DNA from: Oopsacas minuta
Taxonomy: Eukaryota > Animalia > Porifera
Assembly: GCA_024704765.1 (NCBI GenBank)
Contig: JAKMXF010000006.1
Coordinates: forward strand, 1-64,000
Length of the DNA stretch: 64,000 nt
Direction: 5' to 3'
Both the position numbers and the translations under genes were made by a program. Shown piece by piece: positions 29 through 52,871 of this stretch (position 1 is its first letter; the number at the start of each line of letters is the position of its first letter). A model generated the notes under the pieces. That model worked only from the letters and a program-made list of their open reading frames with translations, did no database searches and had not been told where the DNA came from.

Positions 29-1285
29 ATGTTAATTACAAGAAGAATAATCATTGCAATCATCATGGTACTTCTGACTGCGACTGGTATAATAATGAAT
101 TTCTTTTACACACAAACACTGACAACTCCCATTGAAAATACTCCCAAAATTTCAACACATCCTCCAAAGATCAAAAACAAGAACATGACAGCTATTTTGA
201 ATAATTCACCATGGATTGAGTACAGAAACAATTGGAAAGGTAAAATAGTAATCGTATCTGATATGAAAAACAAAAAGATAATCCTTCCAAATCAATACGT
301 CATAACTATGGAGAAGAAAGGTCCACATCCTTTGACACAAGTTTATCCCAAATTTCTAGATCGTATTAACTCAGTGAATGATAATTGTGCAAAGTTAACT
401 CACAAATTTACCCACGAACTAAATCTTGGTAGCTCCATCTATTCCTTACATTTCAATGCTGATTATGAAGTAGTTCGTTGTCTTGTACCAAAAGCAACAT
501 CTCATATTTGGACTAAGAAATTTGGGGATATGATGAACACTGACCATCATTATACTAATGAACAAATCAGGCAGAAAGTAAGTGTTACAAACCATTTCCA
601 AAGTCCTCTAGATACAGCACGTCGTATGCAGACATATACAAAGTTTTTCATTTATAGACACCCATTTGAACGACTTATATCTGGATTTTGTGACAAATTT
701 GCTGCCACTACATTCACAACGCAGTCTTTCCTGAAACGTTATGGTAAACAAATTATTAAAATAAATTACCTTAAAAATTACAAAATATCTTCCATTAATG
801 AATTAGATGCTAAATATCCGAATTTGGACAAAGACAAAAGGCAAGAAATTATCAAGCAAATTGACCGTATGAACTTACCTATTCTAAATTATAATCTCAC
901 ATTCTTAGAATTTGTTACTTTTGTTACCGATTCTCTGAATATTCATTCGATAGATAAACTGAACATTCATTGGAAGCCAGTATCGAGATTATGTAATCCA
1001 TGTTCTGTTCATTATGACATCATCATTGATCACGACTTTGTAACTACAGAATCACAACTGTTAGTCGATTATCTCCAACAAAACAAAGAAACTAATCGTC
1101 CAATATATTTTGAACCCTATCAAAGACTTTCAACCCGTGAGAAATGTAACCAGTATTTTCGTGATATTCCGAATAACATTCGGTTGAAATTGTATGAAGT
1201 TTACCGTGATGATTTCACTTTATTCAGGTATAGCTATAATGGTGCTAGCAAGGAGTTTGCTTGTGAAGAGAATAGAACTGATTGA
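29..1285 (+). CDS. Golgi carbohydrate sulfotransferase (Sulfotransfer_2, CHST8/9/11-like), type II membrane protein
   Basis: N-terminal TM anchor; 5'-PSB-like CLVPKATSHIW; 3'-PB YRHPFERLISGFCDKF; HWKP..LCNPCSVHYD; C-terminal YxxDFxLFxY. Intronless 418 aa. Confidence 0.9.
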   Translation: MLITRRIIIAIIMVLLTATGIIMNFFYTQTLTTPIENTPKISTHPPKIKNKNMTAILNNSPWIEYRNNWKGKIVIVSDMKNKKIILPNQYVITMEKKGPHPLTQVYPKFLDRINSVNDNCAKLTHKFTHELNLGSSIYSLHFNADYEVVRCLVPKATSHIWTKKFGDMMNTDHHYTNEQIRQKVSVTNHFQSPLDTARRMQTYTKFFIYRHPFERLISGFCDKFAATTFTTQSFLKRYGKQIIKINYLKNYKISSINELDAKYPNLDKDKRQEIIKQIDRMNLPILNYNLTFLEFVTFVTDSLNIHSIDKLNIHWKPVSRLCNPCSVHYDIIIDHDFVTTESQLLVDYLQQNKETNRPIYFEPYQRLSTREKCNQYFRDIPNNIRLKLYEVYRDDFTLFRYSYNGASKEFACEENRTD

Positions 1286-14703: not shown

Positions 14704-15790
14704 GGTTATTTATCCTGTTGTACATTACTTCGAATATTTGGGTATAGGACTAAAGGTGTGTATATCAATTAGCCTGAGCCCATCATATACATTCGAAGAG
14801 CTACCATCTCATTTGGATAATAACAAGAAATTTCTTCATGGTAGGGATCCTGTAATTCCAGTGTAACCACATCAGAAATGGGACCAGTCAGCTTTATATG
14901 ACCCGCGCGACCGATCGTCCGATCAATCTGAAGCAACTGTAAATCTATAATCTATACTATGAAAACGCAATTAATCTCTATGTACGTGTGTGTATATGTA
15001 TATATGTTGTTGTTCGGAATTGATTGAAGAAGCTGGAAGACTCTTACGGCTGAATTTGGGCATACAGGGGTATTTTGGGCCTGGCTCAGACATATTTGAG
15101 TCTTGGACGAAAATTCACACCTATGACAAAATTATGACGTCATTGTCATCTTTGTTTAGAAATCGAAAAATCACATTATTAACCACTGCTCAGCCAATAT
15201 ACATAATATTAGTTTGAAATTTGAATCACAAGTCAACCTGTAGTCAGACCCGGCCAGCCGGCCAACACTGACCGGTTCCATCTCTGGACCTTATATAATT
15301 AGACTGGCAGCATATGAATGAAGAATTTCCACACAGGATTTTCAAATGCAAATTGCCAAATGCTAAATATTTCCATTACAATCCAGATATGGATGGAAAT
15401 GGAGTTCTCCAATTACTAATGCAACATCGATTTTCCTCAGTAAGGCAGATGCTGAACACATCAATGTTTACATCCGTATACGTACACTATAGGAATATAA
15501 GCGATTGAATAAACAGCGAGTTATTTTCATTGGCATCCTCAAAATTAACTGATTTAACTCGGGTTCATAACTTGGGTCCTGGAACGATCTATTCAGAGTG
15601 ACTCCGGTACTAACCCAGGCATTTGTGTCTTGAGCTCGAAATTTGTATCATATATTTCTATTTCCATATTGGTACGCACATATTCATTCTCGATTGTCTA
15701 AGACTCAAGGTTATATTTATAGCAAGTACTATTGGTATATTTACATTTTACAATAATTTAGCATGTACTTGTGCCCATCACATACTCAGA

Positions 15791-18700
15791 ATGGCAGATA
15801 AAGGATCTCCCAAACATATACCACTCTTGAGCATACATGATGACGCTTCTCCAAGTCCTGTCTCAACTGTAGGCAAAGCATCGAAATCAGTCCTCTTGTC
15901 CAGATTCTGTCGTTACCATGGAAAAAGTCACAGTGTATTCGATATAAAGAAAGTGAATTCAAACAAAGATGTCTTTACGGAGGATTTATTGTTAGCTTCT
16001 GAAGACCGTAGATCCTCTGAGCCAGATTTAGCTGAATTATCTCTTATACATCTCAAAACAGGAAATACTTTTAAGATAAATAGAAACATGTTGAAATTCA
16101 TAACAATACCTCAACTACCAAACATTTTGTATCAAATCATTGATTCAGGTAGTATTCAAGCGTTAGAATATTTCTTTCGAAACGGGCCAGACTTGAAAAC
16201 ACTGTCCACTACGCACAATTTATTTCCATTGCATTATTCCGCCGAGAGATCGCATTCTGAGATTTTAATTTGGATGCTCGAGAATAAAAGTTTGAAGAAT
16301 TTATCCGAGAAGACAGATTCTAAAGGAAATACATTATTACATGCAGCGTGTATGTCAAATAATTCTGAATGTTTTAAGTGTTGCTTTGAAAAACTCAAAG
16401 AAGTTTCCGTTGATCTTTCCAAAATTATTGACATTCAAAATAATACATTCCAGACACCCTTATACGTTGCTACGCAGAATCAGTTTCAAATGGCAATAGA
16501 GATTCTATTAGAGTCAGGTGCAGACCCAATGATACCAGGACCAGGTGGATTAACGTCTATACATTTAGCTGCACATAATGGTCTTATTCTATTGCTGCAC
16601 ATGTTATTGAGACAAGCAGATTCTAATAGGGATGAATTGAAGAAACTATTTGGTAAAAAAGTCAGTTTAGAGAATGGAGAAGAGTTTAACATTATGCAGA
16701 TGGCAGCACTTGATACTGTATCATTGCTAGTACAATTTGGTGCTGACCCGAATACATCACGGAAAGAATCACAGATTTCTCCTTTAATCCAGGCTGCACG
16801 TGAAGACAACCTTGAGCTTCTACGTGTTCTGCTTCAGTCAGGAGCTAATCCAAACCTACCTGATAGCAATGGTAATACTCCGTTAATGGGTGCTATTACT
16901 ATTGGCAGTGTAGACGGAGTAGCAATGTTATTGGATGCTGGAGCTTCACCTAATCTTCCTAACAAAGCTGGGTTCAATGCTGTTAACCAATGTGCTCAAT
17001 ATGGTCATGTGGATGTGTTAGATTTATTGGTTAGAGCAGGTGGTCTACTCGTGAGTGAGGATATGTTCACTTCTGCACTGCACTCAGCTGCTTTCTGGGA
17101 CGAGGCTGAGATTCTACGTATCATGCTAACCAAGTACAAAGCACCAGTTAATACACTCAGTAAGATAAGCACTCTCCCAGTACATCCCGCTATTCGTAAA
17201 GGACATTCTGCTTGTCTACGAGTATTGATAGATGAGGGTGCTAATATATATTTTAAGAGTCCTCTAACCGGTGATACCTTGCTGCATCTAGCTGTGAGAG
17301 AGAATCAACGAGAAGCAGTACGTCTGTTGGTTAAGGCTCGTATTAATCAGGATGAAATTGATAATGATAATTTAACTCCACTAATGTTAGCTGTACAACT
17401 CAATCGTCATGATTTGATTCCTATTCTATTCGCTGCAGGTGCTAGCTTAGATAAAACTAACTTACAAGGTAACACGTCACTACATATCGCGGCTATTCAC
17501 AGTTCCCTACGATCTGCAAAGTGTATTCTCGATCTGATTCAAACACTACGAGATACGAATACCGATAAATGTTTGTTTGAAGTTAAAAATCTCAAAGGTG
17601 AAACTCCATTCGATATAAGTTTAAACAAACCTAAAGAGACAGTATCACGGTTATTCATAGAATATGGGTCGAGTGAGTATTTCCTAAGATCTCCCAAATC
17701 CCAAGAAGACGACACCAAACGTTCACTAGCCGCAAATTTGCCATTCAACATTTTCCATCGTGTAATGAACAATAATAGATTTAAAACTATGCGAGTTTTG
17801 CAGGAAAAAATGGTTTCATATAGTGACTCGCAAAATGTAACACTGACGTCATCATTTTTGGACATAGATGAATCCGGGTTTTTACCAGATAATGAAAATT
17901 ATAATTTTCGTTCTAAAACTGTGCTTCACAAGCTATTGGATTGCGCTGAGACTGAAGTCAAATATCATCCACTAGTCAACATTGTAGTCAACAAGAAAAT
18001 ATCAATTTATCGGAATTGGTATTTGTTTTCTTTTCTACTATACTTTGTCTATCTTATTTTCTTATCATTCGCGCTTTTTCAAGCTGCAACTCTCTGTGAC
18101 CCTCTCTACTACACTGGAACATTAGATTATTTGCGGCTTTTTTCGGAAATTGTAGTCATATTCTTTGTGATTTCGTTCTTTCTCTCTGAATTAGTGGAAA
18201 TCTGGGTTGATTGGTATAATATTATTCAAGAAAAACGTTTGGAGAGTGATATTGCTGTCAAAACTATCGAATATTCAGGTCAATTCTCATCAGCATTTAC
18301 ATTGCATAAAATACGTGAATTGTTCCAGAAAATTGACCGACGTACATTTTACTTTCCATCAGCTTTTTACTCGTATTTTTCTGATTTCTACAATTTTCTG
18401 GATATTTTTTCTATAATGTTCGTGATATTCGTTTTCATTCTACGTTTATCTGATTCACGAGCTCAATGGGTATTCGCTTCAATAATGTACATCATAAATG
18501 TATTCCGTTTATTCAAATACATTCGCATAATCCCAGCTCTCGGCGCATACTCTGTCATAATTTTCAGGATATTCTTGATTGACATGCCAAAGTTCTTAGC
18601 TGTATTCTTCATTATCTGCCTTGGTTTCTATGGAGGTTCTCTGCTTGCCTTACGCTTTTCACCATATGCACCTATCACAAACAACTGCACATTATCAAAC

Positions 18701-19525
18701 CCAACAACCTCATCTGTAAATTCCACCTGTACAAATATAGATCTTAGATACTTCAATCATACAAACGTATTCCGTGATCTTTTAATTACAGGAGTTTTGT
18801 TGTTAGTAGATGGCGGAGCTAGTGGTCACGAAGCTGATATTAAACTGGATTATAGATGGTATTTTGAAACTGTCTATATTATTTCAGCATTCATTATATC
18901 CGTCGTGCTGAGTAATATTCTAATCGCTCAGCTGACAGACACATATTCACAGATTTCTGTTCAGAATGAATTGCATTATAAACTGGAATTAGCCGTAACC
19001 TTAGAACATTCTTCTAATCTGTTCTTTTTCTGTGGCACAAAGCCTAGGAAATATTGCTCTTTTGAGAAAATTATATTACCCACGCAACAGTGGGAAGATT
19101 TGACAATGCAAAGTTACTCTAAAACAACTGAAGAGTTATTGTATGACGTCACAGAGAATTTATTAGAGTTTCGGCAGGAAGTTGATCAAGATTTGGATAT
19201 TAATCTAAAGTCAAGTTCTGACCTTCATAACAAAGTTGAGAATCTCGAAGAAATGTCTAGTCTTTGCCTCAAAAATATCTCAGAAATTATCACAAATCAA
19301 GAATCTATGCTCGCTAATAACAGTGGGAATGTGAGCACTGTCCCTTCGAAAATTGACGAGGATCTTTCCAGTTTCTTAACTCAATCTCGTTCAATCATGG
19401 ATCAGCAAATGAAATATTTGCAGGATTTGGAAACTCGAATGGAAGAGCGAATTCAGCGTTTAGGCAATCAATTAGATGAACGTTTAAAATCCGTGGATGA
19501 GCGGTTACAAGCACTACAAAAATAA
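15791..19525 (+). CDS. Ankyrin-repeat TRP cation channel (TRPA-like architecture), intronless
   Basis: About 14-16 ankyrin repeats, HPLVNIVVNKK pre-S1, six hydrophobic segments, S6 exit NILIAQLTDTY, C-terminal coiled coil. First ATG 15791. Confidence 0.9.
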   Translation: MADKGSPKHIPLLSIHDDASPSPVSTVGKASKSVLLSRFCRYHGKSHSVFDIKKVNSNKDVFTEDLLLASEDRRSSEPDLAELSLIHLKTGNTFKINRNMLKFITIPQLPNILYQIIDSGSIQALEYFFRNGPDLKTLSTTHNLFPLHYSAERSHSEILIWMLENKSLKNLSEKTDSKGNTLLHAACMSNNSECFKCCFEKLKEVSVDLSKIIDIQNNTFQTPLYVATQNQFQMAIEILLESGADPMIPGPGGLTSIHLAAHNGLILLLHMLLRQADSNRDELKKLFGKKVSLENGEEFNIMQMAALDTVSLLVQFGADPNTSRKESQISPLIQAAREDNLELLRVLLQSGANPNLPDSNGNTPLMGAITIGSVDGVAMLLDAGASPNLPNKAGFNAVNQCAQYGHVDVLDLLVRAGGLLVSEDMFTSALHSAAFWDEAEILRIMLTKYKAPVNTLSKISTLPVHPAIRKGHSACLRVLIDEGANIYFKSPLTGDTLLHLAVRENQREAVRLLVKARINQDEIDNDNLTPLMLAVQLNRHDLIPILFAAGASLDKTNLQGNTSLHIAAIHSSLRSAKCILDLIQTLRDTNTDKCLFEVKNLKGETPFDISLNKPKETVSRLFIEYGSSEYFLRSPKSQEDDTKRSLAANLPFNIFHRVMNNNRFKTMRVLQEKMVSYSDSQNVTLTSSFLDIDESGFLPDNENYNFRSKTVLHKLLDCAETEVKYHPLVNIVVNKKISIYRNWYLFSFLLYFVYLIFLSFALFQAATLCDPLYYTGTLDYLRLFSEIVVIFFVISFFLSELVEIWVDWYNIIQEKRLESDIAVKTIEYSGQFSSAFTLHKIRELFQKIDRRTFYFPSAFYSYFSDFYNFLDIFSIMFVIFVFILRLSDSRAQWVFASIMYIINVFRLFKYIRIIPALGAYSVIIFRIFLIDMPKFLAVFFIICLGFYGGSLLALRFSPYAPITNNCTLSNPTTSSVNSTCTNIDLRYFNHTNVFRDLLITGVLLLVDGGASGHEADIKLDYRWYFETVYIISAFIISVVLSNILIAQLTDTYSQISVQNELHYKLELAVTLEHSSNLFFFCGTKPRKYCSFEKIILPTQQWEDLTMQSYSKTTEELLYDVTENLLEFRQEVDQDLDINLKSSSDLHNKVENLEEMSSLCLKNISEIITNQESMLANNSGNVSTVPSKIDEDLSSFLTQSRSIMDQQMKYLQDLETRMEERIQRLGNQLDERLKSVDERLQALQK

Positions 19526-41200: not shown

Positions 41201-42212
41201 GTCCAGGTCAATAATCAACTAATGCACAGCACATGGGTTACAAATACTGGATGCAGGCTTCCAATGAATATCCAAATTGTATATACCACTTTCATCTCTC
41301 GTATTAATTATGTAATTCAAAAACTCAATAAAGCTGATGGCATATTTATTCTGGTACTGAACCAAGTCGGTCTATTTGTTTGAGAATATCTTACTTCTTT
41401 GAATCAGACAAATGTGTGTATTGTCTTTCAAAGCTTTGCCTATCGTGAGGATATCTCTTCAGGTAATTTGAATAATAATAGCTTTTGCATATGTATTCAT
41501 ATACTCATATCTAGGTGGATCTACGAATTTGTTACAATAACCTGAGACAAGACGTTCGAAGGGATGTCTGTGTACGAAAAATTTCGTATAAGTTTGGATA
41601 CGATGTGCTATTTCTCTGAGCGGTTCGAAGTGATTAGTCAAACTAATGTTATATACCAAATCCATACTAGTAGGTACATTTGGGCCTATCATCTTTGCAA
41701 ATTGTATTGTCCATGTATCAGATGATGCCTTTGGTACAAGGCAATTTATTACTTCAAAATCATCATTGAAATGTAAGAAGTATAGAGAAGAACCAAGCAC
41801 AAGTTTGTAGTCTATTTTCTCTGGAAGTTCTTGGCAGGTCTTATTCACAAATTCAAGACGTTCAAAGAACTTTGGGTAGGCTTGTGTAAGAGGATGTGTT
41901 CCTTTCTCTGTCATAGTCTGAACATATTTCTTCGTGAAAAGTATTTGTCTTTTACTAAATTCGGTTTCTATCAATATTTCTCCATTCCAATTATTTCTGT
42001 ATTCAACCCAGGAGTTGGATGAAGAGTAGAAACTTGTACTGTGTAATTATTCGGAATTTGTAACGTGTGAGAAAGATTTCTGTATGATAAATTGGAATTT
42101 GTTCTTTCAAATATTGCTCGGATGATAAAAATATTATTGCAAAAAGACCTGTTAGAAGTGTCCATACTAGACTCAAGGTTATGTAGTAAAATTGAAGTTT
42201 TCGGGCATGCAT
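41201..42212 (-). pseudogene. Sulfotransferase pseudogene, paralogue of 29-1285
   Basis: TM-anchor ORF, then frameshift to SWVEYRNNWNG..HPLTQAYPKF..HRHPFERLVSG, further frameshift, in-frame stops (SKK*DILKQIDR; CNPCAVH*); the C-terminal motif was not found. Confidence 0.88.
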
Positions 42213-42623: not shown

Positions 42624-42859
42624 AAGGCGTATGTGATTAGACTTTAGTATAAGGCTCGGTATTGATCTCAGTGGTTTTTTGTTTGTAGTTCCGTATCCGC
42701 TCTACAACACACAACGTTTATGACTAAGAGCTGAAAATATACCTTGCGTTTTCGGTTTATATAGACGCACAGATATATTGAAAATCCGTCCAGAATTGGC
42801 CCGAAATGTGACAATGAAGAATTATTTGCCAATTTTATTTTGGATGCTAAAAAAATCGG

Positions 42860-45800
42860 TTAACCTGCTGGTTCATCCTTGCCAACTGTCCCGCGATCTT
42901 TATCAGTGTCATAGAGGAATAATTCAGAATCACATTTGGAAGAAGCGAAATACAATGGAAGACACAATGGAATATACAAGAAGATAAAGTATAGGAAGAT
43001 CGTCATAAAAGTAGGAAAAAGGTAGCAATAAATGTTTCGTAATTTATCATAACATACATATCTCATGAAGATCAATTCTTGCCACAAGTCATTGGAAACA
43101 ATCATATAGTGTATCTGGATATCTCCTCTTCAACTCCTCAACTAGTAATATCCGATAGGTGATATCATCAGGGTTTTTAACAGCCTCATGGGTCAGTATA
43201 TTACCTTCTTCATCTGGGATATCTAGACATGAACCTGTTTTTAGAAGTTCTGTAAATGCATAAACATTCAGATGTTGTATAGCATCGTGCATAGCAGTTC
43301 TTTTATGCTTATCTTGAATACAAATTAAGTGTTTTGCACTGCAAGGGGCGTTTTCTTCGTGCTTTCCATCTAATTTTTCACAAGCATTCAGTACGCTGTC
43401 GAGGATCGGTTGATGAATTGTGGATACCTCTGTACATTTTTGACCATCTGAGAATGATGGGATTATTGCAAGATGAAGGGGTGTTCGCTCATTATCATCT
43501 CGGATATACATTGCTCCTATATCAACATCTAAAAGAATGTTTACTACGTCAGAATATTTCCGTTCTATAGCTAGATGTAATGGCGTGTAGCCGTTATGAT
43601 TTTTCAGACGTGTAATAATTCTGTCTGAATCTGAAGAAGGTTCAGGCTCATTTTTCAAAATTGTTTCAATAAGGACCATTCGTTTTACTGAATCTAGAAA
43701 TTCAACTGCTATATGTAGTATTGTTGATTTATCGTCTTTATGTGGATAGAATGGAGATTTTGATTGAAGAAGAAAATTGGTAACTTCGATATTACCATTT
43801 TGTATGGCTAGATGCAGAGCTGTGTCGCCATTCAAGTTTCTTATTGACAGAAAGGTTTGTTGATTGGGGGCATTTTCATGAATAATTTGTACATAAAGTA
43901 AATCTTCTGTTTTAACAGCATAATGTAGCGAGGTTTCACCATTATTGTCTTGGACATAAAGATCTGGTTTGTGTTTCAAGAGAACATTCAAATTATCCAT
44001 TGTTTAGCATGTATACAAGAATGTAACATAGTTTGTCCTGAAGAATTTTTCAAATCTAGTATACTAGAATATTTACTCGTCAATTTGATGGATTGAGAGA
44101 TCCATTCTAAAACGCGATTAATAAATTCACAAGATTTACCTTGGACAATCATAAGTTGTATTAATGTGTTCTTTCTTTCACCATGTGTGTAGTGCAGCTT
44201 TGGAAAATGTTTGAGGAGAGACATTAGGGCATCTGGAGTTTGATCCAAAATACTCAAAATTTCTAAAGAGATGTACATTTGATCAGATTGTCGAATAAGA
44301 TTATGGAGAGATTGATCCAATTTTGAATCTACACTGCTAGTAGTATCGACCTCAATCTCTTCACTACTACCTCCAATCAACGCTGTACTGTTCAAACAAA
44401 ATTCTAGGAGGTCCGTTTCATCGTAATCATTTGAATCGCGTTTCAATTGTTGAATTCCAATAATACATAATGTTAAATCCAAATGTTCCTCTACACAAAT
44501 AGATTGACAAAATTGCCTATCGGTCTCATTGAAAGTATCAGGAAAAGGTTCGGGGGATCCACTATTGTCAACTATCTCTTCGTGTAAACTGTCTGCCATT
44601 GGTTGACTTTCTGATTGTTCACTTGAGAGTGAATCTAAAATAGTTGCTAATCCTCTCGAAATTTCTTGCTTTGTAACATTAGGGTTTAACATAGAAAGAA
44701 GATGAATGATTTGAGGATTGAGGATAGCTTCTCTCTGAAACAAATTCAAATCTCTTCGTAGAATTAAAATTTGTAAATCAGTGAAGAAGTTAAGGGAATA
44801 GAATTTGTTGTGTGCAAAATCTAAAGTGACACTCCAGGTGTTTAGTTTTGCATTTCCCAACTCAATCTCACTTTTAAGTATTGGGATAGCTTCAGCCTGG
44901 CATTTAAATTGCTTAACATAATTAACATACGAAATATGGCCAAGATACTTCAATTTTTCAACCATCAGGCTTATTTCAGTGATATATCCGAAAATTGATG
45001 TGAATAATTTTATATGTTGCGTAGCATTTGATTCTGCTTTTATCAATGCAATTTTACTCTGAAGATCTTTCAAATTTTCCAAGTTATATACCCGACTAAT
45101 AGGTGAATGTTGTATGTAAAGGTGGATATTTCCATCACCACTATTGTTGTCAAGGTTAACCTCAAAATATCCCACTTCGAAGATGTCTGTGAGTTCCTGA
45201 ATTGTACTTTTACCCACTGAACTATGGGCAATTTCTAAATGTTTCCAAATATGGAGCAAGTTAGCAGCTTCATTGAAAGTTTTCAAAAACCTGTCTTTAT
45301 CCACTATTTGATCATTCACTTGATTGAAAAGGTTTATGAATTGATCGTAATTACAATTTGGGCTCATGTCGAATATTAGGGGAGCTAAAGTATTACAGAC
45401 TGAACGCAGGCATGTAATGCGGTTGATATCGAAGTCGGTTACGTCGCAAGATGTTAGTGCTAAATCTACGAAAACTTTCACTTGCTGTGTATCTTTCAAT
45501 GTAGCTCTCGCCCAAAGAATGAAATTTGGGTGATTAAGAAAAGTTTTGAGAAGAGATTCAGCGAAAGAATCGAACTTATTTACTTGTGCAAATATCGTTT
45601 CTAACTCTACTGTAATGATTTCCAAGGTATTCTCTGTTATGAATTGCTCCTTCTGTAGGTTAACTAGTGTATCTAATTGCACAAAGTCTCCTTCTTTACA
45701 GTAATGTACATGTACTTGATAAATTAAGGTAGCTACTTTTGAGGATTCTTGGAGTTGGAAATATTTAAATATCAGTCTAGCAGAGTTATTGATTTCTTCG

Positions 45801-48739
45801 TCAGGATTTCGGAATTTCAATTTCATTATACTAATTGCAGAGGATAGACAGGAAATTTCATGCTTGATTTTATCTTTAGCTTCTCGAAAAATGCTGAAAT
45901 GTTTTTCAACATCACTAAAGAATTTTGCGATTATGCAAAGTTGTCACTGTAACTTCACATTTCAGGTATGCAGGGTACCAAATTTCGTCGTAAACTTCCT
46001 GAATATCAAGGATCTTAGCTTGACTAAAATTGTATTTGCGCAATACTATTCTTTTAAAAATATTCAAAAATACATTAGATTTTCTCAAATGAAAAGACGC
46101 GTTTAGCATTTTTTGAATATGAAGCAAATTTAGATTAGTCGCTAGGATTGAATTTGGGAGAATGCGATAATCAACGGGCAAATTTCCATTGCAGATTTCA
46201 TCTAGTGGCTGCGCCTCAAAATCTATTTTCAAGAAATCTTTTAATTCTTGTGACTCTAAGAGGTGAGTAGAGAAATTGAGGATACAAATGAAATTGAGGA
46301 TTAATTTAGTTTGCTCGTCAAAAAAGTCTAATTTTTCCTTAGAAACTTGAATGACATCTTCAATACTAGCTCGATCGAATTCTGCTTGACGAATTATATT
46401 TCTAGAAGTGAGTGTGTCAAATATAGATAAAAACCTCTCCCTACCTTCGTTAAGATGTCTCAGATTCTTCATTTGAATGTTGACTGCTTTAGAGACTGGA
46501 GAATAATTACGAACTCATCTTCAGCATGTCTCACTTGTTGAGTTATTCCATAGCTATTATATTCAATCCCGTGTAACGAGAATTTAAAGAGTATTTGCCA
46601 TGGCGTCCAAGAGAGAATGTGAGACGTTGGATTCTCCTCAAAAGTATCTTTTTGTTGTTTGTAAATGACATTTAGGATTTCGAGCAGTTCTGCAGTAACA
46701 GGTAGATGTAGAAGATTTGCCAAAATGATTTCCAGGGAGGCGTGGTCTTGTTTCTGACTTAGTAAATCTATGATGCGAAATTTAAAGTAAGAATGTATTT
46801 TTGTTTCGAACTTATGGTTTGTTGATAAATATACGAAAACTTTTAGCTGAATAGTATCACTCAAATCCTGAATTGCCAGTAAGAATTGCTTTTCTACTAC
46901 TTGCTGCCAATTATAAGTGTTTGGAAATTGAAGTGAAAACAATGAATCCCATACATTTATTCGTTGGATAATTATCTCGAAATTTCTTTTATCTCGAATA
47001 TTGAGAAATGAATCAAGTTTTTGAATGAGAATCAAAATTAATTCTGAGGAAGATTTGAAATGTTTTGCATTGACGAAAAATGACTCAGAATCGTTAGTTG
47101 ATAAAATATTCTGCTGAATTTCTTCCAGCATTTGTAATATTTTTACTGTTAATGTTAGGTGTAAAAATACAATATCCGTATTGATGAATTTATCGTCTAA
47201 TTCCCATAGATAGAAAATTGATTCACACATTAGATAGAGGTCTGATTCAGTGATAAATTGCTGATTTTCATGGAGTTTGGAAATCATATATGAGTATATC
47301 TGACACCTCAATTGCATTGGTGTATAGTCACTCGGCCAGGATTTTATTCTATATACAAGAACTGGTAATAAATACTGATAGTTGATAATATTTGAGGAAA
47401 ATTGTTGAAAGTTTTCATTACTTATTGTGATCAATACAATACTGTAGGGTAGAATTGGATCATAATCCCTCAATATTTTTAGAGCCGATTCACAATAGTT
47501 CACATCCTGAAAATTGTAACAACATTTAGTATCGATATTGGCTGGGAAGCCCCAGTATTCATTAGCGAGTATTTCTTGCTGCTTATGGAGTATTACAAAT
47601 CGATTTGAAAATTTAAACATACAATGGTATAATGGTAGAAACGTTATTAAGTGTTTGCTTGAGACATTATGAGAGCCTGTAAAAATAATATTATCAAAAC
47701 ATTCTTGCAAATTTTGAATTGTCTTTTCACTATTTTGAAAGTTTTCAAAGAAGAAAATTTTATTGGCAATTAGATATGCTATACCATGCAAAGTGAATGT
47801 ATTTAATACTTTTTCCAAAAGTTTCTTGTATTCTTCTTCAGGTTTTCTCTTGCGTACCAAAAGTAATGAAAATATCAAAAATCTTAGTGATTTTTCGGGG
47901 GAATTGTCTATCTTTATCTCACTAACTATCCATCGTGTAACAGAGTCAACCTCAGGGTTAATAAAGTCGTCCTTAACTCCCAAATATGTAGAGAAGATAC
48001 CTTGTGATATAGTTTGGAGAGTTAAAACTTGTTCTTCAAAGGTAAAGAATTTTTCTTTAATATATGTATGGTTAGCAAATAAGTGGAATGAAATTTTCCC
48101 TAATTTTATATTACTTAACTTTCCTATTTCATTTGGCAATACCATGGTGTCGTATTTATCAATTATGTTATCTTGTAAGTTTCCCCATCTAATATAGAGG
48201 CAGCGGTTATATTTATCTCCTTGCCCTAGATTTTCTTCTTTACCGTTTAGAAAGTATTTGTAAGAAATCTCAAAGGAGCTTCTTGAATGAAATCTTATGT
48301 TTTCTTGAGGTATAATTACACAACCCTCCAGGAAAATGTAATCTCTCTCTCCATATTTGATTCTCTCGGTTAGTTTCATGCATGTGGTGTCCTCCTTTAA
48401 ATTACCAAATGAAACCCCATTAAACCTCAGCGTTAGATTACCATTGATAGACTTATAATGTTCTAGAAACATGATTGTTTTGAACATTATCTTGAGACTA
48501 GAAGATTGAAACGAAAGACAAATTGTTTCTTCCAAGCATTCCTTGGGTTTCGATATAATTTCGCATTGTGGTTTGGAAATTGGAATTGATACGGCATCTT
48601 CAAACTGTAGGTTTTCTCCACACATTGGGCACACTTTAAATGAATTGGGGGCTCCATTAGGGAAATTATCATTAAATTTACAATGACTAGAGACACATCT
48701 CTTAATAAGCTTCTTTGACTGAATTGGACTGCAATCCAT
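42860..48739 (-). pseudogene. Frameshifted chimera: RNF213-like N-arm, ankyrin repeats, start of a TRP S1
   Basis: RNF213-like motifs (FKVCPMCG, EISYKY, NRCLYI, KVFVDLAL, YNLENLKDLQSKIAL, FYSLNFFTDLQ, YISLEIL); same frame continues into ankyrins (GQTMLH, GETSLHYAV, GDTALHLAI, GYTPLHLAI); frame breaks near 46470, 45915, 44000, 43095. Confidence 0.8.
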
Positions 48740-50038
48740 TGCAAAGCTAAAATTATATTAATTATTTGAAAATTCATAGTAAAAGTGTCATTCAACCTTA
48801 AGTAACGCTCTCAAATGGACGAGATTATCATAGTGATAATTTTGACCAATCGTTTGTGCTTCAAAAAGGTTAAAATTGTCTAAATGCATGAAACAGGAAA
48901 ATATGTCAGATCGTCAGTAATATGGCGTTACATATCGGTTGAAAGACCCAACAGTTAATTGGTTGTGTAATAAGAAATTTGGATTGAAAACAGTCAAAAA
49001 GCAATATTGCACTTATCTTAATATGTATTAAAATTGTAAATCACAATGAAAGCAAATTTGTATTTTAGATTAACATATTAATTAAGCATATAGACTTCTT
49101 GAAATACAGTTTGGTATTATACGATTTGAATATCTAGTTACATATATTATACCAGAACCTTTACTCCCATATTAATAACTATCAATCGTTGTCTATAGGC
49201 CGATCTGTCATTTGTCTATACTAAAGTAGCACAGGGAATACAAAATTTCCAGACTAATTTACAAATAAGACTATCAATTCATTTACATATTTGAAGATAT
49301 TCGTAGTTACGTATTTAGACTCCTTATATGGAAATTGATGTGCTTGACCAATGTTTTGAGTCTGACTTGATCGTATTATCAAGGAAACCAGTCCGATTTT
49401 TGTGAATATATTTCCATTTTCCAGATGATAAAATTGTATGCTAAACATCATCAAACCACACAAATGAAGCTGTATACTGTATTCTATTGTTACATAACAC
49501 TCAGTCAAGGAAATCTATTACTGTGTTCATTAACATCAACAAAAGAGATGGTTCAAGAAACGCAATGAGAAAACCGAGATTATAATGAGATTTGAAGAAA
49601 TTCTCTTTATTGCAGATCTTATCAAAGGCATACGACTTGGCCAATATTTCTAACCCGGGGCAAACCTGTGGTAAAATATTATTGTTAATTTATATTAGGC
49701 AGTCATGATCCGCCCCGGGGCTAGGATCTTCAAATCCGGGCCAAATTCCCCTTTTACCTCCCATAGAATCACCTAGTTTACCAAATCTATACAAAATAAA
49801 TAACCTAACGACAACATGGAAGAAAAGGAATTTACATCAAACAGACATGTCCTACACTACAATTAAATAATGGACTGCCCATTCCTCAGATAGAATTAGG
49901 AACCTATAATATTGATAATTAATCTGTAGCAGATGTAGTTATGAATGGAAATAAATTGGTAAAAGGCTAAGAGAAATATAGCTGAAAGATCGTATTATTC
50001 TAATCAATATAAGTAGAATATTGTATGGAGATATTTAG

Positions 50039-51184
50039 CAGGCTTGCCGTGGATATGGATATCCATAGGATATTCAATAATAGGGATGCTGTTATAATTA
50101 AATTGACAATATTACTAAGTACACTTACTAGTGTTGTTCAGTAGCGGCTCTAGCATGGGGTTAGATGGGGCTAGCGCCCCATCTAAATTTTGTCGGCCCC
50201 ATCAGCTAAGCTGGTGTATTACATGTAACTAACCAGCACCACACGATTATTATTTCATACCGTATGAATATCAAATTATGAAATTATTTGATTTCCCAAT
50301 TGAGAATCGATTATGATGGAAAATTAGTTATTATCGGTAAGATCGGTGAAGTCGTGTAGGTAGCCAATTATTGTAATGTCAGCAATTGTTGTGTCACGAA
50401 TAGTGCCAGATTTCATGTAAAGTTTTGAATTCTTTCAAGATCTATGTTGGTGAAAGGTAACAAATTACTATGCAATTATGATGCAATTATTGCTACTGTT
50501 ATTCATCCCTTTCACTCGTGAATTCTGGTGTTGCTAGCCAAAAGGCAAAAGGCTACTACTCTTGGTACAGAGCTCCAAGAATTCAGAGACACCCGGTACC
50601 AATGAAGGATCCAACTCAGTTTTGGCGGTACAGTGTCTTAACACGTCTGCGCACCTATGCAAAGATAATTTTCTCGGCACCAATATCTTCTACAGCCGTG
50701 GAGAGGTTGTTCAGCCAGGTCGGCAACCTACTTTCAAAAATAAGAAAGAGAATGTCACCGGCGGTCATGAAGAAATTAGTATACATCAGATACCAGAAAA
50801 TGTATATCACAATAATCAAGAAGCTGGGAATTGTAATCGAGCCAAAGGAAGTTGCGATGGCCATCAACAATGAGCCCATGTCCCTGTCATTTGAAGACGA
50901 TAGTGATATCGAAGAGTTTATGAATGACAGTTTACATAGTATCTAGAGCTTCAGTATATAACGTTTAGTATAGGAATAGATTTTCATTAGTAATCTACAT
51001 CTACATAGCGGTTACCTGTACATAATAGTCACCACTCTTGAATGGCCGTTATAGACAAGATGTTCTAGGTCTTTGAAATATTCATGGATATATCCTGGTT
51101 GTTGGATATCCATGGATATCCATGGATATTCACGCAAAAATGACATGGATATGGATGGGATTTTTCTCATCCACGGCAAGCCTG
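50039..51184 (+). mobile_element. Internally deleted hAT transposon
   Basis: Perfect 16-bp TIR caggcttgccgtggat / atccacggcaagcctg; perfect TSD atatttag (50031-50038, 51185-51192); ggatatccat subterminal repeats. Confidence 0.95.
50518..50946 (+). pseudogene. hAT transposase C-terminal dimerisation fragment
   Basis: DPTQFWR..LRTYAKIIFSAPISSTAVERLFSQVG..R.RMSP..MKKLVYIR; the DDE N-terminal part is missing. Confidence 0.88.
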
Positions 51185-51734
51185 ATATTTAGCGAGATTT
51201 ATTTGCAGGATGTAGCATGCTAATGATAATCTGGCCTAAAATACATACAAAATGTATTTATCACGTTTCGGCCGACATGACACTCAACAAATGTCGTGTG
51301 GTACAACCAACCATGGCTTTAACAACTAAGATATTTTCGCAGCTTTATTGTGCGATACATTTAAAAGTTATTTAAATGTATCGCACAATAAATCTGTAAG
51401 ATATACGTATTGGATCTAAAGTGTAATTTTATTCGAATATTGATATTGCTAGGTCTATTACATAAATAATGTTAATGGAATATCAGTGTTGCCAGGTTGA
51501 CGATTGTTTAAACCACATAAAAATTATGCTAGAATTTTCCCAGAAAATTAATTCGTATTATGCCAGAATTATTGCTGTAATTACAACTATTATTCTAGAA
51601 TTATTCTAGAATTATGCTATAATTGTTATGCAAGATTCGGATAATTACTCACTGTGAATTTGACATACTATGTGCATTATGTTATATTTAACATGGTAGT
51701 GCCTCCAATTATTAGTGTCATATTATTTATATTA

Positions 51735-51836
51735 CAGTAGAACTCGGATAAGACGTACTCAGCTTAAGACGTACACTCGGTTAAGACGTACTAATTTCTG
51801 ATTCCCGAGGGGGTACGTCTTATCCGAGTTCTACTG
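51735..51836. mobile_element. 102-bp Tigger-like MITE
   Basis: Perfect 24-bp TIR cagtagaactcggataagacgtac, TA TSD. Confidence 0.93.
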
Positions 51837-52493
51837 TATTATTTTGATTTTTTGATCTATACTGTTGAGTATGTTAATTTGGATAATTATTGAGTATGAC
51901 GGATGTTGCTGTAAAAACATCGAAATTTCTCATGATAAAGTTGGCGTGTTCCAGGGTTATAGTAGTGACCATGGATGACAATATCCCACTGTACTGGTTT
52001 CTACTGTACTGTAGTAATCTAGTGAATCAGATTCTAAAGGTATTAAAGGGGACAGTTGGATTAAGTGACACTGCTCGTATTTACATAATCCACCTTATGA
52101 TTATTGCTTGACCATAAGGTAGATTGGCTGCAGCATATATCCATGTTATCATAACCTAGGAATTCAATCATTTATGAGTTTTCTTCTATTCTTGTAACTC
52201 TTGTGATGATATATTTCATCAGTAAGATCTTATTTAACTAGCTTATAGGCTAGTATTAGCCAATGTATCTCTGTTATAAGATATTGTATTAGTATTATGT
52301 ACGCATACTTTCATATCTACCTTAAGAAATTTCTTACCACCCTACGTCCCATTGGAACAGTTAAAACTGACTCATAAAGACTATATTGAATATTGGCTCT
52401 TATAAATTGACACACATATGGGTGTAAACTTAGATTACACTAAGGTTCTGGTAAATATGTTCTGAGTAAATAGTAAATATAATACTAATAATG

Positions 52494-52871
52494 TTATAAT
52501 AATGGTAACAATTCTACTGTAATTTGAAGAGTTATGCTGTCTTCTTTACGATATTTATCTTCTAATATTTCAGTGATTGAAATGAATGCAAATTTTCCAT
52601 AACCTAGATTGGTCAGGTCAGTAGGTCTCATAAAGGATTCAGGACATTTCACCAAACATTCCTTAGTTATTTGACCAGAGTAAATCAAATTATCATTACT
52701 GTTAAACTGATCGAGTAGAACAAACGTATATTTGTATTTGATAGGCCAGTGTAGTTTATCATAATATTCTCCTTTCATAATACGAATGAATACCCCTACT
52801 TTACCTGTATTATCATGATTCCATACAATATTCTCCTGACACATATATAAACCTACATAGAATGGATCACT
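52494..52871 (-). pseudogene. 5'-truncated TRAF C-terminal MATH domain
   Basis: DPFYVGLY..GKVGVFIRIMKGEYYDKLHWP..FVLLDQ..F.RPT..GYGKFAFIS..KYRKEDSI; stop codons immediately upstream, no zinc-finger or coiled-coil part seen. Confidence 0.75.

Follow-up and report, generated by a model that had tools for sequence, protein, structure and literature searches.

The locus

The window analysed was the whole stretch of 64,000 nucleotides at the start of an Oopsacas minuta contig (JAKMXF010000006.1). A nearly open stretch lies on its minus strand, running from an ATG at 48739 to a stop at 43089-43091. It consists of five open segments in two alternating frames and is not the single reading frame described in the first-pass annotation. 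Two independent proteins of 756 and 848 amino acids are listed here in the public annotation, the 848-residue one skipping 191 nt to bridge a frameshift; this is corrected here, the pieces belonging to one broken chimeric copy. The results computed directly are the two homology blocks and where they join, the deletions, the native stop, and how the substitutions are distributed. The coordinates of the features are given in Table 1.

Table 1. Features of the chimeric copy and its flanks in the window.
Feature	Positions	Strand	Basis
Further upstream segment of the same segmental duplication, rearranged	49404..52871	-	blastn against L001 7136-9335
5' flank copied from the parental RNF213-like gene, comprising promoter and 5' UTR region	48740..49405	-	blastn block, 98.26% over 5158 nt
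Copy of codons 1-1496 (N-arm and linker) of the RNF213-like E3 ligase KAI6659371	44252..48739	-	tblastn, 90% cluster, PDB match
In-frame 3-nt insertion (TTC) relative to the parent	48047..48049	-	Pairwise MAFFT alignment
1-nt deletion (AAA to AA), first frameshift; ends the 756-aa ORF at stop 46469-46471	46481..46482	-	MAFFT alignment, ORF frames
Two 1-nt deletions 8 nt apart (G lost in TTCGTTT; AA to A), second frame break, stop 45915-45917	45913..45920	-	Alignment to parent
Fusion junction, GAGT microhomology common to both parents	44252..44255	-	4-nt overlap of the blastn blocks
Copy of codons 70-456 of the ankyrin-repeat protein KAI6659376	43092..44251	-	blastn, Pfam, matching C-terminus
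1-nt deletion (GGG to GG) within a 33-residue ankyrin repeat, third frame break	43999..44000	-	Alignment to parent
Copied 3' flank of the ankyrin gene, holding a spurious 81-aa ORF (43105-42860)	42737..43088	-	Homology runs 352 nt past the parental stop

Parental genes

The source of the first part is KAI6659371, an intact RNF213-like gene (RNF213/mysterin family; 4864 aa) located on another contig of the same assembly (JAKMXF010000066). Positions 49405-44252 of the window were aligned by blastn to the region upstream of this gene and its codons 1-1496 (L001 14488-9334) with 98.26% DNA identity over 5158 nt. A tblastn search with the parent returned three pieces with 95-96% protein identity, which together cover its residues 1-1498. 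The native ATG of the parent is kept at 48739. No match to the first 756 amino acids was obtained in Pfam and PDB searches; Pfam has no model of the N-arm, and the identity of this ORF was taken from an exact-cluster look-up, which placed it in one 90% cluster with KAI6659371. The linker residues matched PDB chains of RNF213 (E = 5e-21), the region concerned being that of the human and mouse structures (e.g. 8s24 and 6tax). The RNF213-like N-arm proposed earlier, at about 1450 codons, is present; together with the linker it extends over 1496 codons, the first third of the ligase.

Nothing beyond parental residue 1498 was found in the window by tblastn with the whole parent, in agreement with the earlier remark that the AAA+ core and the E3 module are absent. 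Homology ends at residue 1496-1498, ahead of the six-unit AAA+ core, which in KAI6659371 begins at residue 1503; the E3 module (RZ finger, and RING where present) is likewise missing, whereas the parent carries PF20173 ZnF_RZ-type. Codons 1-1496 are thus common to parent and copy, and the core and the RZ-finger E3 module are absent from the copy only. Without these and with its frame broken, the copy cannot be an RNF213-type ligase.

The second part was derived from KAI6659376, which sits 40.5 kb downstream of KAI6659371 on the same strand and contig. Window positions 42737-44255 are 97.04% identical in DNA to its codons 70-456 and 3' flank (blastn; L003 11723-10204). Tandem 33-residue ankyrin repeats were recognized with Pfam (Ank_2, E = 6.5e-29; Ank, E = 1.3e-23), and the passage of the open frame into ankyrin repeats at the motif YISLEIL, pointed out in the first-pass annotation, was placed at about 44252. 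The copy ends at the native stop of its parent (43089-43091), KAI6659376 and the window ORF both terminating in ...TLYDCFQ. KAI6659376 is the C-terminal part of a giant ankyrin protein: over its whole length it aligns with the final 456 residues of an orthologue-like 4529-aa ankyrin protein (P0024), the alignment finishing 4 residues short of the C-terminus of the latter. As the 4529-aa protein ends with KAI6659376, nothing follows the native stop. In the copy, codons 70-456, the stop and 352 nt of 3' flank are kept, with one frameshift within an ankyrin repeat, whereas the first 69 codons and all of the upstream giant-gene sequence are replaced by the RNF213 part. The 3' flank is the most diverged region, with 17 substitutions and two indels in 352 nt.

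Junction and mode of duplication

At the junction, RNF213 codon 1496 is joined in frame to codon 70 of the ankyrin gene. The breakpoint lies about seven residues ahead of the start of the RNF213 AAA+ core; that an in-frame join should nearly coincide with the boundary between the linker and AAA-core domains is most likely to be chance. Copy-specific substitutions were located in a three-way alignment within 40 nt on either side of the junction. Proteins combining an RNF213 arm with ankyrin repeats, proposed earlier as something to look for elsewhere, were sought among 1.84 billion representative proteins. The junction (query residue 564) was spanned by none of the best 150 of 245 matches, in which those to RNF213 stopped at 565-568 and those to ankyrin proteins started at 563-564.

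The 5' flank carries 11 substitutions in 667 nt, a rate equal to that of the coding part. Further upstream (49404-52871), blastn blocks matched L001 7136-9335 in mixed orientations with 92-98.6% identity; an insert of 1.1 kb was identified there, as were an inverted piece of 0.74 kb and the 3' end of the TRAF/MATH gene lying upstream of the parental RNF213. The MATH fragment, at 52494-52844, appears in the public annotation as a 116-aa MATH product. The copy takes in 667 nt upstream of the ATG and, beyond these, approximately 2.2 kb that extends into the adjacent TRAF/MATH gene. That upstream non-coding and TRAF/MATH sequence was copied indicates a DNA-mediated duplication and speaks against a processed pseudogene (retrocopy). 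Intron loss is uninformative on this question, the parental RNF213 region being intron-free in codons 1-3152. The genes flanking the feature in the window (sulfotransferase, MACPF and NHL) differ from those at the parental loci, which rules out a haplotig.

Frame breaks

Three of the four frame switches result from four 1-nt deletions relative to the parents; the fourth is the native stop of the ankyrin gene. At the ankyrin site the parent reads HAKQWDNLNVLL, whereas the copy reads HAKQWII followed by a stop and then MDNLNVLL in the next frame. Introns were excluded as the cause of the switches: there are 13-43 nt of overlap between the open frames, a 33-residue ankyrin repeat contains one of the switches, the parents are read through without a break and introns average 341 bp.

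The assembly was a SPAdes hybrid of Illumina and PacBio data polished with Pilon. Any base run in which a deletion is situated is at most three bases long, and one deletion is in no homopolymer. There are four in 5.66 kb, whereas frameshifts occur at about one in 45 kb in the other long ORFs analysed (P ~ 1e-5 if this rate is applied). The deletions are probably real and not assembly errors. They could nevertheless have arisen in assembly or polishing, errors of this kind being likelier when a paralogue of 98% identity can attract the reads. The copy is also not alone in having such a break: in this assembly the giant ankyrin gene of the parental locus is split by a 1-nt frame break as well (L003 at about 9950).

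Substitution pattern

Substitutions were counted with codons containing a gap skipped or set to X. The dN/dS ratio of the two halves, a check proposed together with the first description of the locus, was calculated against the parental genes, giving 0.81 (55 nonsynonymous and 17 synonymous changes) in one case and 0.49 in the other; neither ratio is distinguishable from 1 (p = 0.46 and p = 0.09, respectively). Diagnostic sites with variants specific to the copy number 83 and 42. The substitutions of the first block are distributed over codon positions 1, 2 and 3 as 26, 24 and 22, and coding divergence equals upstream non-coding divergence (p = 0.87). The substitutions of the copy look neutral. 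Nonsense substitutions in the parental frame number zero in about 1880 codons, the expectation being approximately 2.5 if the copy had received half of the changes under neutrality (P = 0.08). At 54 amino-acid differences, the closest of five outgroup RNF213s agreed with the parent at seven, with the copy at nine and with neither at 34; at only 36% identity, the outgroups are too distant for the changes to be assigned mainly to the copy.

Origin of the copy

With 98.3 and 97.0% DNA identity to its two parents, four 1-nt deletions and neutral-looking substitutions, the feature is probably a recent, chimeric, partial, DNA-level duplicate of two O. minuta genes that is now a pseudogene. It is most likely a one-off and an ordinary dead duplicate. 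A segment would have been copied from JAKMXF010000066, starting inside the TRAF/MATH gene upstream of KAI6659371 and ending 352 nt after KAI6659376. Either in the course of copying or afterwards, the intervening 40.5 kb, from RNF213 codon 1496 to codon 70 of the ankyrin gene, would have been lost by way of the 4-nt GAGT microhomology; the deletion may have followed the copying, or the template may have been switched while copying was in progress. The join would have made an in-frame hybrid of about 1884 codons, consisting of the RNF213 N-arm and linker followed by 387 ankyrin-repeat residues. This hybrid would later have gained the four 1-nt deletions and the neutral-looking substitutions and become a pseudogene, the broken frame suggesting loss of function. 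At most, a 756-aa N-arm fragment could still be produced from the kept start codon and promoter region.

A deletion fusing two neighbouring genes, followed by decay, had been one of two explanations offered in the first-pass annotation. As regards the loss of 40.5 kb and the frame breaks it was essentially right; however, the neighbours sit on JAKMXF010000066, the window holds a diverged duplicate of them, and the partner is not the TRP-like channel at 15791.

Chimeric duplicated (non-processed) pseudogenes and fusion genes formed by segmental duplication likewise have two source genes and flanking non-coding DNA copied at the DNA level. Joining at microhomology (here 4 nt, with 40.5 kb lost) and subsequent frameshifts and neutral substitutions are also shared, and the Oopsacas feature shows no essential difference from them. 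In itself it is of little weight, being a single episode in the history of how RNF213 paralogues were gained and lost in a glass sponge. It is a clean example of microhomology-mediated gene fusion in that both parents are identified and the junction is pinned to the base.

Alternative readings

The hybrid may be dead while the truncated 756-aa N-arm fragment (48739-46472) is still produced, and this fragment might regulate the full-length ligase or serve as its decoy. Such a case is compatible with the pseudogene reading and is considered unlikely. The ORF is intact from the native ATG, the 667 nt upstream are 98% identical to the parent and the protein is present in the public annotation. However, dN/dS over the first 500 codons is 1.03 and there is therefore no sign of constraint, and the sequence further upstream is inverted and broken by the 1.1-kb insert. 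The other ORF pieces were looked up as exact proteins in public assemblies, with no match; the parents were seen only in the NCBI record, so that these look-ups are uninformative on expression.

It is somewhat less likely still that the feature is a young functional chimeric gene, in which the N-arm and linker are fused to an ankyrin tail, expression is driven by the promoter copied from RNF213, and errors in assembly or polishing account for the frameshifts. The in-frame fusion, the lack of nonsense substitutions, the retention of the promoter-proximal region and ATG, and the 756-aa and 848-aa proteins called in the public annotation would all fit such a gene, and the assembly may contain some indel errors, as the frame break in the parental ankyrin gene would suggest. 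Against this, the four deletions are independent and avoid runs of more than three bases, the assembly is Illumina k-mer based and Pilon-polished, the substitutions are spread evenly over codon positions at the non-coding level of divergence, and no junction-spanning relative was found among the best 150 of 245 matches. It is equally doubtful that the frame breaks are assembly errors, or very recent and polymorphic, and that what is expressed is either a hybrid protein, with the substrate-sensing N-arm and linker of RNF213 cut exactly where the AAA core would begin and fused to an ankyrin tail, or the free 756-aa fragment; if so, the hybrid or free N-arm would represent a naturally occurring dominant-negative or decoy directed at the RNF213 family of immune ligases. 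Were reads to show an intact frame, the feature would be a modestly interesting young chimeric gene.

An assembly chimera wrongly joining the RNF213 and ankyrin loci is very improbable. Both sources are indeed on one other contig, but the flanks differ by 1.7-3% from the parental loci, some of the substitutions lying no more than 40 nt from the join on either side, and the joined pieces are therefore not the parental sequences. Moreover, assemblers join at long shared repeats and not at 4-nt microhomology, and the flanking sulfotransferase, MACPF and NHL genes differ from those of the parental loci.

The supposed channel tail

The other explanation offered in the first-pass annotation was a real architecture coupling an RNF213-type sensor to an ion channel, for which an 81-aa ORF (YDKLRNIY...SSKCD, 43105-42860) was taken as a TRP channel fragment paralleling the channel at 15791. 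This ORF supplies one hydrophobic stretch after the ankyrin repeats, and an intact ankyrin and Ion_trans channel gene does lie in the window at 15623-19522. However, the ORF follows the native stop of the ankyrin gene in another frame, has no Pfam match and shows no significant similarity to the first transmembrane segment of the channel at 15791 (E = 46). Eight of its nine nucleotide differences from the parent alter the residue and its core is 49% T; it is the T-rich 3' flank translated out of frame and is not coding. The orthologous giant ankyrin protein stops there too, without a membrane domain. Nothing channel-like, such as the six transmembrane segments of Ion_trans, lies downstream in any frame, the next gene being the sulfotransferase.

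The feature carries no ion-channel piece, its partner being the C-terminal 387 residues of a soluble ankyrin-repeat protein, and with four frame breaks besides, a true RNF213-ankyrin-TRP channel fusion is hardly conceivable. A false 'RNF213 sensor arm coupled to ion channel' architecture is thereby removed. With TRPA-like ankyrin and Ion_trans channels the copy has ankyrin repeats alone in common, and it is without Ion_trans or an in-frame transmembrane region. The channel at 15623-19522 was rejected as donor of ankyrin or transmembrane sequence, tblastn giving nothing at E < 1e-3 and only generic ankyrin matches at looser settings. The ankyrin repeats of the copy are 23-25% identical to those of this channel (E ~ 0.01, generic), compared with 97% DNA identity to the non-channel ankyrin gene.

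Reading frames and parental genes

On sequence grounds, the minus-strand RNF213–ankyrin hybrid (window ~49405-42737; hereafter the copy) is classified as a standard chimeric duplicated pseudogene. The ORF listing and a three-frame scan gave five open segments alternating between two frames. The middle segment (segment 3) matched experimental structures of RNF213 (E = 5e-21; query 13-310 aligned to residues 1377-1684 of the human construct) and segment 4 consists of ankyrin repeats (Pfam Ank_2, E = 6.5e-29); the first 756 and last 81 amino acids gave no match in Pfam or the PDB. Of the features described in the first-pass annotation, the RNF213 and ankyrin parts and the position of the junction were confirmed; the single reading frame and the TRP fragment proved not to be real.

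By exact-sequence look-up, the 756-aa first ORF was found to fall in the same 90% cluster as KAI6659371 (4864 aa, 'E3 ubiquitin-protein ligase [Oopsacas minuta]'), located on the 1.37-Mb contig JAKMXF010000066. In a tblastn search this RNF213 parent, in which the RZ finger (PF20173) is present, matched the window in three pieces at 95-96% identity (residues 1-1498, ending at window 44246), with no further match in the window beyond residue 1498. At the DNA level, window 44252-49405 (block 1) corresponds to 14488-9334 of the RNF213 parental locus L001 with 98.26% identity over 5158 nt, including 667 nt 5' of the ATG. The ankyrin parent, KAI6659376 ('Ankyrin repeat protein [Oopsacas minuta]', 456 aa), shares its contig and strand with the RNF213 parent, and window 42737-44255 (block 2) corresponds to 11723-10204 of its locus L003 with 97.04% DNA identity. 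From the record coordinates, the two parental breakpoints are ~40.5 kb apart.

Blocks in window 49404-52871 match L001 7136-9335 in mixed orientation and extend into the TRAF/MATH gene located before parental RNF213, which therefore indicates a segmental duplication at the DNA level; a retrocopy is ruled out by these blocks and by the copied 667 nt. A 0.74-kb parental upstream piece (L001 8590-9335) is inverted in window 49404-51295, 5' of the copied RNF213 start, and is interrupted by a 1.1-kb insert (50040-51183) with no match in the parental loci or the rest of the window. The 116-aa MATH ORF is a gene fragment, yet the public record annotates it as a protein. The public annotation also splits the copy into separate 756-aa and 848-aa proteins, the latter model (45826-43089) having to skip 191 nt to cross a frameshift.

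Over its full length, KAI6659376 aligned at 54% identity with the final 456 residues of P0024, a 4529-aa giant ankyrin protein from another organism, stopping 4 residues short of its C-terminus. In the annotation, the parental giant ankyrin gene appears as two genes of 3709 and 456 aa separated by 29 nt; aligned to P0024, which is continuous, they form a single reading frame that a 1-nt shift interrupts in the purine-rich run GAAGGAAGAAGAG (L003:9900-10010, just upstream of KAI6659376). Either the truncation is genuine or the assembly contains an indel here.

Features of the copy and its upstream region
Feature	Position	Strand	Remark
Open segment 1	48757-46472	-	762 codons, ATG at 48739
Open segment 2	46514-45918	-	
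Open segment 3	45943-43991	-	
Open segment 4	44003-43092	-	Ankyrin repeats
Open segment 5	43129-42863	-	
In-frame 3-nt insertion versus parent	48047-48049	-	
1-nt deletion versus parent	~46482	-	AAA to AA
1-nt deletion versus parent	~45920	-	G lost from TTCGTTT
1-nt deletion versus parent	~45913	-	AA to A
1-nt deletion versus parent	~43999	-	GGG to GG, inside ankyrin repeat
116-aa MATH-domain ORF	52494-52844	-	Copied 3' end of TRAF/MATH gene upstream of parental RNF213

Junction

Blocks 1 and 2 share a 4-nt overlap, GAGT (window 44255-44252), where RNF213 codon 1496 (Ser) is followed in frame by ankyrin codon 70. Copy-specific substitutions ≤40 nt from the join on both sides speak against a false merging of the parental loci by the assembler. 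In the RNF213 parent, similarity to the AAA core of mouse and human starts at residue 1503, equivalent to mouse construct position ~1773, which we take from the published mouse structure to be near the linker/AAA boundary. With the join before residue 1503, the copy retains the N-arm and linker and has lost the entire AAA+ core and E3 module. It differs from an RNF213 ligase in lacking these defining parts, the AAA core and the E3 module, and from a TRP channel in lacking the defining Ion_trans domain.

A 651-residue segment bearing the junction was searched against 1.84 billion representative proteins using HMMER. Among the 150 best-scoring of 245 matches, alignments to RNF213 relatives ended at query 565-568, giant ankyrin proteins began at 563 and a 456-aa protein (90% identical) began exactly at 564. 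None of these 150 spanned the junction.

Decay and origin of the copy

The four 1-nt deletions explain all frame switches but the last, which is the native stop. Introns were rejected as the cause: the parental frames are uninterrupted at these points, and the mean intron length in O. minuta is 341 bp (PMC10280926). Four frame breaks in 5.66 kb are many more than the ~1 per 45 kb in the other long ORFs examined would predict (P ~1e-5). The assembly is a Pilon-polished SPAdes hybrid of Illumina and PacBio data (PMC10280926); occasional indel errors appear possible, because the parental giant ankyrin gene is also split by a 1-nt break.

In block 1, 55 nonsynonymous and 17 synonymous changes were counted (dN/dS 0.81, p = 0.46 versus 1), distributed 26/24/22 over codon positions 1/2/3, with a divergence of 1.60% in coding and 1.65% in upstream non-coding DNA; for block 2 dN/dS was 0.49 (p = 0.09 versus 1). 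The substitutions in the copy look neutral. None created a stop codon, versus ~2.5 expected if half of the changes were neutral on the copy (P = 0.08), and the outgroups are too distant for polarising copy–parent changes. Whole-block divergence was 2.8% in block 2 versus 1.6% in block 1 (p = 0.005), for which gene conversion in block 1, a constrained parental promoter or a difference in age may account. The non-coding flanks diverge from the parents by 4.8% (ankyrin 3' flank, 42737-43088) and 1.65% (RNF213 upstream, 48740-49405).

The aligned sequences display two homology blocks, a microhomology junction and evidently disabling deletions. We infer that a ~49 kb segment was duplicated to the window locus, its ends lying within the TRAF/MATH gene and 352 nt beyond the ankyrin gene. 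The internal 40.5 kb would have been lost through microhomology-mediated end joining or template switching during copying, the in-frame join arising by chance (one in three), and the hybrid is probably decaying rather than maintained. It would gain interest only if its frame were intact and the hybrid expressed. Because the ATG and promoter-proximal DNA are retained, the locus may still yield an N-arm fragment of 756 aa or an RNA without function.

3' flank and neighbouring genes

The ankyrin parent ends ...RRYPDTLYDCFQ at the same point as segment 4 (stop at 43089-43091), and copy–parent homology runs 352 nt past the stop into the 3' flank. The 81-aa ORF (43105-42860) previously read as a TRP fragment falls within this copied flank and is out of frame with the ankyrin gene. 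The parental sequence is open there as well, and 8/9 nucleotide differences alter the residue. The hydrophobic core of the ORF contains 49% T and 9% G, a composition through which T-rich non-coding DNA typically comes to resemble a membrane helix. Nothing channel-like was present in the frames downstream of this ORF, where the next gene is a sulfotransferase. The ankyrin parent ends 4 residues from the P0024 C-terminus, and together these results show that the stop is followed by no coding sequence.

The reading of the intact gene at 15623-19522 as an ankyrin plus Ion_trans channel was upheld: the intronless ORF (15623-19525, plus strand, 1244-1300 aa) encodes ~14 ankyrin repeats and Ion_trans in a TRPA-like layout. 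The channel protein matched nothing in the copy at E < 1e-3 (tblastn); loose settings gave generic ankyrin similarity only (23-25% identity, E 0.013 and weaker), and the proposed parallel between first transmembrane segments had E = 46. Kinship of the copy with this channel beyond generic ankyrin similarity was rejected.

Directly 3' of the duplicated block lies a short Sulfotransfer_2 ORF (151-171 aa, window 41459-41974, minus strand), which may be another gene fragment or a single exon of a spliced gene; a full-length 418-aa sulfotransferase is located at window 29-1285.
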